A stretch of DNA of 64,000 nucleotides from Macrostomum lignano (lineage: Eukaryota): contig NIVC01001149.1 of assembly GCA_002269645.1 (NCBI GenBank), positions 248,001 through 312,000 on the forward strand. Reading direction: 5' to 3'. Positions within the stretch are counted from its first letter, which is position 1, and each line of letters starts with the position of its first letter. This document shows positions 39,914-42,900 of the stretch, piece by piece. Below the pieces are notes generated by a model, which ran no database searches, was not told the origin of the DNA, and saw only the letters and a program-made list of their open reading frames with translations. The position numbers were made by a program, and so were the translations under genes.

Positions 39914-42900
39914 TCACATCCAGCCGTCCTCATAGTCATTGTTGGTCAGAGCGCAGTCAGATTCTCCCTGGTTGCCCAGCGGCTTGTTGAACCGCTCGAT
40001 GGTGCCGTGACCACAAGCGGCTGCTGCTGCGGCGGCTGCGGCTGCCGCTGCTGATGATGAGGCGGATGCTGATGCTGGCAGCATCTCTCCGAGTCCGGCT
40101 GGTGAGCAGGAGAGTCTGTCCTCCTCCTCGCCGAAGTAAAATGTTCTGTGGGAGAATTAAGTGGAGGGGTTCGGATCTTCTCCTAAATTGACACAGACTT
40201 GCAAGAGGTCAGTCAAAAATGTACATATGCAGAAACTTCCTCCATAATGGAATGTTTCTTAACTGCTGTCACATTTTGCACCTAGACTGTAAAAGTTTTA
40301 AACTTTCCATACCCTGACGGCTATCAAAGCTGCATGTCTCCCACGACAATCACAATTGGTACAACATGCGCACATGATATTTACATTGATATCACTAAAC
40401 TAAATTACTAATGGGATAATGCAGTGCACTAATCCCATAGCGAGCTAATATATATATATATATATATATATATATAATTTGTACAAGTAATTATATACGG
40501 ATTTTTAATAGAAAGTGTATCAAAAAAGTGCAGTTTAATATGCATAAAACGTAGTGAAACAATTCTTTATCAATAAGTCGATATCACGCACAAGCACATG
40601 AAATACATTTGCATGTAAATGTAACTATTTCTATTTGGGCACAACAATCAGCATTCGAAATGGCTTATTTTATAAGAAATCATGAGCAAAATCGCTAAAT
40701 AAATTATGCTAATGTGCATTCTGTGCTACTATATGGGGTTGGCTAAGCAGTAGGCGACGATGCATATTGCAAGCATTGCTGGAAATATATAGGAGTATAT
40801 AATGGGAGTGCACTTTCACGAACTGCGCGTTGGATGTCTCCTTTCTAATTATTTTAGTTAACGAAATTATTAAAAGCGCGCGCGTGGATCTGCACTGCAT
40901 GCCATGCAGGCTTGCATTGCGATCTGCGGCTGCATGTAAATTTTGTCGGGTTTCTCGACCAGCAGGCCAAGATTAATTTGTGCATCATTTATTACCTGTG
41001 GCTGTGAGACGGTCGAACAGCTTTCACTTGAAAGGAATTGGAATGGGAGGTTATTCAGTAGTATGCAGCATGCTTTAGTTGAGCTGGACAGCCGCAAGTC
41101 TGCTAACATCTTTCACACGCTGAGGCGTCAGTTCAGTCACATGATTTGAAACCATCGAGATATTTTACATTGGAAAGATGGAATGCATGTTTTTTTCGGT
41201 AACTTTCCAGGTTTTTTCAATTATTAGATACGATTATCATAGCGCAATTTCAGTCAGTACAACAAATTGGAGCCCAGGCACCCACCTCCCCGCAAGCTCC
41301 GCTGGTGCAGCTCGCAGGTGCCCGCGCTGCTCTCACCTTTCGGCGGCTGCAACTTAGATTTCGGCCGGCAGCGAAGGCGAGAGAGCAGGTGCACAACTAG
41401 GGTGAAGAACAGGCTGATACTCAGGGTGCTGGTGATGAGGAACAACACTCGATCTGCGGGTAATTCAGGATGCAGATGATAATTTACTTCGGCCTTAACA
41501 TTATGGTTTGAAGTGTGCAAGTTGAAGATAGAAGACGAGTACTGGAGGGTGAAAGAAATGGCTTAGATTGAGTTTAGGACTTTTGCATTGAAGGTTTGAG
41601 GGTGGCGTACTTGTTCATTGAGGGCAAGGAGTTGCGTACATTGTGGGTCAGGAGTTGCATACATTGAGGGTCAGGAGTTGCGTACATTGAGTGTCAGAAG
41701 TTGCATACATTGAGGGTCAGGAGTTGCATACATTGAGGGTCACGAGTTGCGTAAATTGAGGGTCAAAAGTTGCATACATTGAGGGTCAGGAGTTGCATAC
41801 ATTGAGGGTCAGAAGTTGCATACATTGAGGGTCACGAGTTGCGTACATTGAGGGTCACGAGTTGCGTACATTGAGGGTCAGGAGTTGCGTACATTGAGGG
41901 TCACGAGTTGCGTACATTGAGGGTCACGAGTTGCGTACATTGAGGGTCACGAGTTGCGTACATTGAGGGTCAGGAGTTGCGTACATTGAGAGTAGGATGC
42001 TTAGTTTATAGTTAGCTGACAAAATTTACTCAAATCAGCTCACCCTGTCCCTGCGTCTGCACAATTCTGACCGCAGTGGGCTGACTTCGCATCTTCTGCT
42101 CGAACTGCAGTTTGACTGTCAGTGCAACGAAGCTGCATGAGGTGGAAAAGCGGTTGGAACAAAACAGAGGTCAGTTTCTGCTTTTAATGTTCGGCTGTCT
42201 AGAGAGAAGCGACCAGTTCCTTAAGCCAGACCGTATATTTGTTAATCAGTACATTTCGCACAATATTTAATTCAAGAGATATTCAAGGGAATATTATAAT
42301 ACGGCATGTTCTCGAGGACTAAATATGATTAATAACGCGCGAATCATGGTGCAAAATAAGTGCTCCGATAATCCATTGTGTGAGCTTTGAGATAATAACC
42401 ATGGTCTATAAAAATGTGATGTAAGTATTGGAAGCACGACACAAGTCTGTGATGTCAGTGTTAATTCTTTTGCGACAGCGAGTGTATCAAAAAGCGCGAA
42501 CTGTAGTTTATAATTATTGTTTGTTTAAAAAACGTCATGCACGCTGGTTATGGGGAACAGGATGTCAGTTGGCTGGCATGCATTCTAAACAAACCGAAAC
42601 AGCTTGCATGCTGAGAGCTCCGTGTACTCGCATTGTTACAAACTATTTTGTAGTATTAAACGTATTTTATTAGAGACTATCGACATGCTAGATACTGTTC
42701 AAAGATCAAATAGATCAAAGACCCAAATTGTTCCGAGTGGGTCGAGAATCGAACCCCCGACCTTCCAGTTGTTAGTCCGACGCTCTAGCCACTAGGCTAC
42801 AACCCCCTAACCTTCTTATGCTAGCCATTGTAATTGTACCTTCAAAAGTTTTCTACAAAACATATCGGCTATTCGGTGTTGATCGCAATATTGACATTGT

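Follow-up and report, generated by a model that had tools for sequence, protein, structure and literature searches.

The gene studied here lies on the minus strand of a 64,000-nucleotide stretch of DNA from the flatworm Macrostomum lignano (assembly GCA_002269645.1, contig NIVC01001149.1, positions 248,001 to 312,000), hereafter the window, and codes for a DEG/ENaC-like protein whose second transmembrane segment (TM2) has lost the pore signature of the family. The first-pass annotation of this DNA had claimed that TM2 lacks both the G-x-S selectivity filter and the pore glycines, and this was borne out; the acidic residues of TM2 (E18' and D21') are replaced too. As the hallmark ion filter is lost, the protein would not be able to act as a standard DEG/ENaC channel. 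It is not, as that annotation implied, a single odd subunit, the loss of the filter being common to a flatworm-wide subfamily.

Positions in TM2 are numbered according to PMC8536179, where G-A-S occupies 10'-12'. In 19 canonical members obtained in the same search as the flatworm relatives described below, G3', G6', G10', S12' and E18' were invariant or nearly so and 21' was almost always acidic, while the M. lignano residues at 3', 6', 10', 12' and 18' are R, F, S, L and F. When the alignment was anchored on the flatworm clade, MAFFT and hhalign agreed on the register R3' V L F6' L I T S10' T11' L12' S I S L F F18' T L V V H23'. This sets S-T-L (41430-41422) opposite the G-x-S of the family and a His (41391-41389) opposite the conserved Asp/Glu of the clade, both of them within exon 11. 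The first-pass annotation had placed GLFIGAS opposite SLFFTLV, and hence G-A-S opposite T-L-V, a register which the clade-anchored alignments did not reproduce and which is probably wrong. A single-sequence hidden Markov model (HMM) alignment put G-A-S opposite I-T-S instead, with a score of about 0 bits. The T-L-V and I-T-S registers were weighed against S-T-L, which was preferred as the clade-anchored one, none of the three being statistically secure; the best anchor is provided by the Schistosoma japonicum sub-group, in which EIMGICFGTL still resembles GQMGLFIGAS. In no register are G-x-S, the pore glycines (3', 6', 10') or E18'/D21' restored, and the helix is devoid of any acidic residue. 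A segment of TM2 is the most hydrophobic 19-mer of the protein (Kyte-Doolittle 2.34), TM1 and TM2 being its top two hydropathy segments. In the AlphaFold2 (AF2) model of A0A1I8J0A9, a M. lignano protein with the same TM2, the beta12 strand leads into a helix predicted to run without a break over residues 705-741.

The peptide on which this analysis depends is well delimited in the DNA. Positions 42132-41286 code for beta12 and TM2, and the GT/AG join of 42132-42044 to 41453-41286 gives exactly the spliced TM2 peptide of the first-pass annotation, whose coordinates are the outer ends of both exons. Inspection at codon level revealed that exon 10 ends in ATT GTG CAG ACG CAG GGA CAG G/gtgagc (peptide ...IVQTQGQ), with a consensus donor, and that exon 11 starts at ttacccgcag/AT CGA GTG TTG, with a consensus acceptor. 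The only close relatives in the databases are three M. lignano proteins belonging to one 90% cluster, namely PAA83169.1 (854 residues), A0A1I8J0A9 (769 residues) and A0A1I8G4G9 (802 residues). The window protein is about 99% identical to PAA83169.1, with all differences falling outside beta12/TM2, and its beta12 and TM2 peptide is identical in PAA83169.1 and A0A1I8J0A9; the window gene is either BOX15_Mlig002427g1 itself or a near-identical (about 99%) copy. Since the GenBank annotation of Mlig_3_7, the source of PAA83169.1, was built from RNA-seq by means of a genome-guided transcriptome (PMC5730564), PAA83169.1 counts as transcript evidence. According to these comparisons the gene is real and transcribed, the RNA support belonging to the PAA83169.1 locus.

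The third database protein, A0A1I8G4G9, reads the C-terminus differently. This part of the model is frame-patched (43156-41286), with frame changes in exons 9 and 10 and one base skipped at 41425, and it is therefore unsuitable for the analysis of TM2. An HMM of the clade was built from the beta12, TM2 and C-terminal regions of the other flatworm relatives, leaving M. lignano out. The spliced peptide of the window scored 16.4 bits with it, over its whole length, vs. 1.1 bits for the alternative frame of A0A1I8G4G9; given these scores and the disagreement of both PAA83169.1 and A0A1I8J0A9, that reading was rejected. The frame hops coincide with homopolymer runs in an older assembly and would be sequencing or assembly errors. 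Among the 2,551 six-frame open frames of the window (at least 15 residues), the best match of the clade HMM was the TM2 exon. The first-pass annotation had also raised the case of a different or additional exon supplying a canonical G-x-S TM2. The RNA-based models contain the same exon as the window, and a six-frame search of the 64 kb for a canonical TM2 was negative, both with a G-x-S regular expression and with a canonical-TM2 HMM, whose best hit (E 0.9) was an unrelated frame of 19 residues.

Family placement and flatworm relatives

The Pfam ASC profile (PF00858) matched PAA83169.1 with 102.1 bits, for a cut-off of 23.6, over profile positions 60-389 of 455, while a canonical control was matched from 1 to 455; positions 1-59 and the last 66 of the profile had no match in the M. 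lignano protein. The exons of the window alone reached 31 bits (1.9e-7), and phmmer aligned the stretch between FPAVT and the thumb, both included, with ASIC1 structures (E = 1e-6). The AF2 model has a mean predicted local distance difference test (pLDDT) score of 67, with values of 80-90 in the core, and its top 33 Foldseek matches were all ASIC, ENaC or BRTNaC1 (ASIC5 included), ASIC1 being the best (E = 7e-14). The landmarks of the family are present, with two transmembrane helices around the ectodomain and FPAVTLCN after TM1, while the G/S-x-S filter with flanking glycines and E18', by which the family is also recognized, is absent from TM2. On these profile matches and on its predicted structure, the protein is a member of the DEG/ENaC superfamily by descent and fold, and its pore signature, as aligned, falls outside the definition of a DEG/ENaC channel.

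An exhaustive phmmer search with A0A1I8G4G9 as query against 1.84 billion representatives yielded 17 matches below 1e-10. Those looked up were all flatworm proteins and none had G-x-S, while most of the weaker matches presented the canonical GGxxGLxxGxS..E. Members were found in trematodes (Paragonimus, Dicrocoelium, Opisthorchis, Schistosoma, Heterobilharzia, Calicophoron, and Fasciola), in cestodes (Echinococcus and Taenia, the Taenia match being weaker, E 7.8e-6) and in a monogenean (Cichlidogyrus). Within the searches made, and judging from the sequences matched, the subfamily is phylum-wide and so far confined to flatworms, covering Macrostomorpha, Monogenea, Trematoda, and Cestoda. The non-canonical TM2 is also spanned by Q5D958, a S. 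japonicum protein derived from complementary DNA (cDNA).

The M. lignano protein is about 33% identical to its closest flatworm relatives and, in overall identity, only about 20-28%; several features are shared among them. A helical insert of about 230 residues follows the thumb motif CxCxxPC...Y and precedes the last palm strands. It carries the motif WAFLRE(S/T)NRTAF, found in M. lignano exon 8, in sequences P0002-P0007, P0092 and others, and three of its residues (Q, A and N) are invariant. The beta12 motif LVxxTxQ is likewise common to the M. lignano gene and the relatives. TM2 has the same length throughout the subfamily, and all 11 members compared have S, G or N at 10' and L, V or F at 12', where Leu is by far the commonest residue, present in almost every relative. 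Position 23', two turns further down and close to the cytoplasmic end of TM2, is Asp or Glu in 9 of the 11, Asn in S. bovis and His in M. lignano, in which the acidic feature is therefore missing. M. lignano departs from most relatives at two further positions, having Arg at 3' where theirs is Glu or Asp and Phe at 6' where they have Asp, Gly, Ser or Thr.

Regarding the insert itself, AF2 predicts a helical bundle for it with good confidence (pLDDT 80-90), and the Foldseek matches were generic four-helix bundles only; these, and a weak BRO1/BROX match (E = 0.5), were considered uninformative.

The relatives have short N-termini with Cys-(His/Arg)-Arg directly before TM1, and no conserved His-Gly (HG) motif was found before TM1 when it was sought among them. 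In M. lignano, the N-terminus MTCRHQHGSAVRRRRRNSCRL (residues 1-21 of PAA83169.1 and A0A1I8J0A9, coded by exon 1 and located off the window) contains an H-G dipeptide 13 residues ahead of TM1. Its spacing to TM1 is near canonical, yet no relative has it, and it may have arisen by chance. An upstream FSTTQR, considered as a degenerate HG region, was rejected because it is the decayed edge of a 20-bp tandem repeat.

Possible roles of the altered TM2

The alignments and the AF2 model are compatible with a continuous, hydroxyl-lined TM2 that forms a differently built pore, a reading which we regard as quite possible, if a little short of probable. The ectodomain would still assemble in an ASIC-like manner. 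Because G10' is missing, the Gly-Ala-Ser (GAS) belt would be unable to form, so that TM2 would be one continuous helix instead of a helix interrupted by the extended belt. Its Ser/Thr-rich face (T9', S10', T11', S13', S15', and T19' in M. lignano) would line any central pathway. Compared with the classic filter, such a pore would probably be wider and discriminate less in favour of Na+, and it may no longer have the classic amiloride site. Since the acidic positions of the parasite orthologues are lost in M. lignano (R3', F6' and H23'), its protein may conduct poorly alone or need partner subunits. Taken more broadly, the subfamily may be a new functional kind of DEG/ENaC-fold protein, a possible but somewhat unlikely reading. 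It could be a channel with a new selectivity (a non-selective cation channel or, in M. lignano, with Arg at 3' and His at 23', possibly an anion-permissive one), or a non-conducting receptor that signals via its four-helix-bundle insert and long tail.

The pattern of conservation bears on these proposals. Within sub-groups, TM2 identity was 0.83, 0.58, 0.71, and 0.96, vs. 0.63, 0.37, 0.52, and 0.78 for the respective ectodomains. As TM2 matches or exceeds the ectodomain in conservation, it appears to be under sequence-specific selection. Small or polar residues predominate at 6', 10', 13', and 17', positions with helical spacing. These comparisons indicate that the ancestral pore constraint is lost and that lineage-specific constraints are in place. 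The first-pass annotation had listed three functional options, namely a non-conducting or accessory subunit, a receptor-like pseudo-channel and a channel with another permeation mechanism, and the sequences narrow these only slightly, towards a TM2 that is constrained and hence functional.

Several observations weigh against a differently built pore or limit the confidence with which it can be proposed. Between sub-groups, TM2 identity falls to 0.2-0.3, as diverged as the remaining protein, while the canonical TM2 averages 0.43 and is the best-conserved part; this divergence fits a release from pore constraints. The small-xxx-small stripe and the acid at the membrane edge could serve helix packing equally well, and M. 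lignano TM2 lacks every acidic pore residue. In addition, the register rests on weak hhalign alignments (E 0.03-0.07) and is uncertain because short transmembrane segments carry little information. The confidence of AF2 in TM2 is only 59-76, and its model, being a monomer, is silent on the pore. The RNA support is that of the PAA83169.1 locus, 99% identical and not demonstrably the window copy, whose exon 1 lies off the window.

Some of these observations would be expected of a protein that does not conduct, the ectodomain and the insert doing the work, by binding of ligands or matrix or by scaffolding via long tails, or the protein being a silent accessory subunit, with TM2 as a packed anchor. 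We consider this the main alternative, somewhat doubtful but almost as probable as the differently built pore. Both lower-pore elements, the GAS belt and a clade-conserved HG before TM1, are missing together, neither transmembrane region is matched by the Pfam ASC profile, and the cytoplasmic tails of trematode members run to hundreds of residues; the free divergence of TM2 between sub-groups and the lack of acidic residues in the M. lignano helix point in the same direction. However, TM2 is not less conserved than the ectodomain within sub-groups, and a polar stripe together with an acidic residue (Asp/Glu) at 23', kept by nine of the 11 members, would be unusual for a plain anchor. The two-transmembrane arrangement and the beta1/beta12 gating linkage are also kept across distant flatworm classes.

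A disguised canonical filter, in which a hydroxyl triplet (I-T-S or S-I-S) takes the filter position of an ordinary Na+ channel, is improbable. Variation of the triplet is tolerated elsewhere, gamma-ENaC having S-x-S and Caenorhabditis elegans DEGT-1 having G-A-T (PMC8536179), and the single-sequence HMM places LFLITS opposite LflGaS, which would retain Ser at 12'. Nevertheless, that alignment is worth about 0 bits, the clade-anchored MAFFT and hhalign alignments give S-T-L, Leu is found at 12' in nearly all relatives, and G3', G6', E18', and D21', invariant or nearly so in the 19 canonical sequences, are gone too.

That the gene is a decaying copy in a highly duplicated genome is very unlikely. 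The genome does contain many near-identical duplicated blocks (PMC5730564), the A0A1I8G4G9 model requires frame hops and exon 1 is absent from the window. Against this, the 12 exons are open and have consensus splice sites, the few amino-acid differences from PAA83169.1 are all outside beta12/TM2, the RNA-based model is intact, the architecture is conserved across distant flatworm classes, and the frame hops, located at homopolymer runs, are read as sequencing or assembly errors. Lastly, an annotation or splicing artefact, with a true mRNA ending in another terminal exon that bears a canonical TM2, is hardly credible: the long repeat-rich introns make exons such as 7 and 9 easy to overlook, but no frame of the 64 kb holds a canonical TM2, the best six-frame match of the clade HMM is exon 11 itself and two independent annotations concur.

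Exon map and other contents of the window

The window contains exons 2-13 of the gene, 12 exons from 62890 to 39914 that form one open frame with GT/AG sites throughout. Exon 1 (MTCRHQHGSAVRRRRRNSCR in PAA83169.1) was sought in the 64-kb window and was not found. Exon 2 (62615-62890) codes for TM1, for low-complexity sequence rich in Ser and Ala, and for FPAVTLCN, the motif that follows TM1; its acceptor at 62890 is the start of the match for both A0A1I8G4G9 and PAA83169.1. The finger region is provided by exon 3 (61717-61881), delimited by GT/AG sites and 98-100% identical to PAA83169.1, and the beta-ball, with CQLSNKRQC...GQCYTLHP, by exon 4 (60820-60968), identified from the Pfam ASC match on the exon translations. 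Exon 5 (60444-60628) contributes palm strands and contains the L, D, Y, and G residues that are invariant alignment columns in the clade, and exon 6 (55325-55424) a Cys-rich region that includes CKC. Exon 7 (48815-48877), a thumb piece of 21 residues, was located via A0A1I8G4G9 and PAA83169.1. It is followed by the 823-nt exon 8 (47889-48711), in which the CSCGKPC...Y motif is followed by the helical insert peculiar to the clade (about 230 residues).

Exon 9 (42926-43156) codes for a Lys/Arg/Gln-rich low-complexity linker ahead of beta12, in frame in PAA83169.1 and A0A1I8J0A9. This linker is extremely basic and extracellular, located just before beta12; none was seen in the aligned parasite relatives, and AF2 models it partly as a long helix. 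Exon 10 (42044-42132) codes for beta12, the last palm strand, which aligns with SLVTLTIQL of the relatives and corresponds to an AF2 strand at residues 687-695 of A0A1I8J0A9. Intron 10 (41454-42043, 590 nt) contains a 23-bp tandem array at 41616-41997, with 16.7 copies. TM2 and the beginning of the cytoplasmic tail are coded by exon 11 (41286-41453), the 22-residue hydrophobic core occupying 41448-41383. Exon 12 (40996-41026), of about 10 residues, was defined by comparison with the database proteins, and exon 13 (39914-40145) codes for the C-terminal tail, which ends in NNDYEDGWM and a stop codon.

The DNA of the window is eukaryotic, its long introns filled with tandem arrays. Nearly all the introns of the gene (41616-63423) carry one, with periods of 4-48 bp; for example, (CCAA)x405 occupies 48916-50533, just upstream of exon 7, and 34 copies of a 48-bp unit lie at 52665-54299. 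These arrays agree with the 15% of simple and tandem repeats reported for the M. lignano genome (PMC5730564). Three other coding elements were recognized. On the minus strand, the coding sequence of a small GTPase of the Arf/Arl type starts with an exon at 2761-3123 (Pfam Arf 1.6e-12). Also on the minus strand, 7131-10976 is an uninterrupted 1281-residue Gag-Pol frame of a long terminal repeat (LTR) retrotransposon, scanned in two pieces and with a Ty3/gypsy-like order of aspartyl protease, reverse transcriptase, RNase H, and integrase. A 24-bp tandem array at 7234-7395, in its 3' end, gives seven ELGQDPPG repeats in the protein tail. On the plus strand, 21037-33513 holds a ZIP (SLC39) zinc-transporter gene. 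Among its exons are 24758-25231 and 32683-33513 (Pfam Zip), together with a probable first exon at 21037-21429 coding for a signal peptide and a His/Glu-rich stretch.

Comparison with known channels

The M. lignano protein resembles ASIC1a (PDB 2QTS, 3S3X, 6VTK) and ENaC in its two-transmembrane topology, its large Cys-rich ectodomain and the FPAVTLCN after TM1, and its palm, beta-ball, finger, and thumb align with theirs. Unlike them, it lacks G-x-S, G3', G6', E18', and D21', its TM2 is predicted as an unbroken helix, its clade has no conserved HG re-entrant motif, and a helical insert of about 230 residues follows CxCxxPC...Y. Its uncharacterised flatworm relatives are annotated in the databases as amiloride-sensitive sodium channel or ASIC4-like proteins. 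They include KAA3681085 of Paragonimus westermani, XP_009164097 of Opisthorchis viverrini, CDS40966 of Echinococcus multilocularis, and KAH8877690 and Q5D958 of S. japonicum, and they share with the M. lignano gene the insert, beta12, the Cys-(His/Arg)-Arg motif next to TM1, and the length and register of TM2, M. lignano adding the Lys/Arg-rich linker of exon 9.

According to a systematic review, G/SxS and HG, seen as defining pore elements of DEG/ENaC channels, are conserved and essential and most mutations there abolish function, DEGT-1 being the exception in its alignment (PMC8536179). The variant filters of C. elegans DEGT-1 (G-A-T, without HG) and gamma-ENaC (S-C-S) indicate that the triplet is not absolutely fixed, and DEGT-1 that HG and the canonical filter can disappear together (PMC8536179). 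However, both keep the hydroxyl at 12', the surrounding glycines and E18', while in the M. lignano gene the entire signature is gone. With respect to flatworms, a preprint on placozoan ASICs places some DEG/ENaC homologues of Platyhelminthes in a separate, highly diverged, lineage-specific cluster, without describing it (10.1101/2022.06.28.497943), and no true ASICs were found in the platyhelminths sampled in an eLife study (PMC9949801). In the open-access texts searched, neither the loss of the pore signature nor the insert was described.

A lineage without the G/S-x-S belt and without a conserved HG, and yet with an ASIC-like ectodomain and a constrained TM2, offers a natural experiment on the roles of those elements. 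As members occur in Schistosoma, Fasciola, Opisthorchis, Paragonimus, Echinococcus, and Taenia and no non-flatworm member was found in our searches, the subfamily could be a selective anthelmintic target if its function is essential. M. lignano, in which transgenesis and RNA interference are available, offers a harmless laboratory system for studying it.

Another known system may help to picture a pore of this kind. P2X receptors are trimeric, two-transmembrane channels in which TM2 is continuous; the pore is narrowest at Thr or Ser residues halfway along this helix, which has an Asp close to its cytoplasmic end. The Ser/Thr residues at 10'-11' and the Asp/Glu at 23' of the flatworm clade resemble this pattern by analogy only, there being no relationship in sequence or ectodomain, and P2X would thus serve solely as a model for how a pore without a GAS belt may be built.

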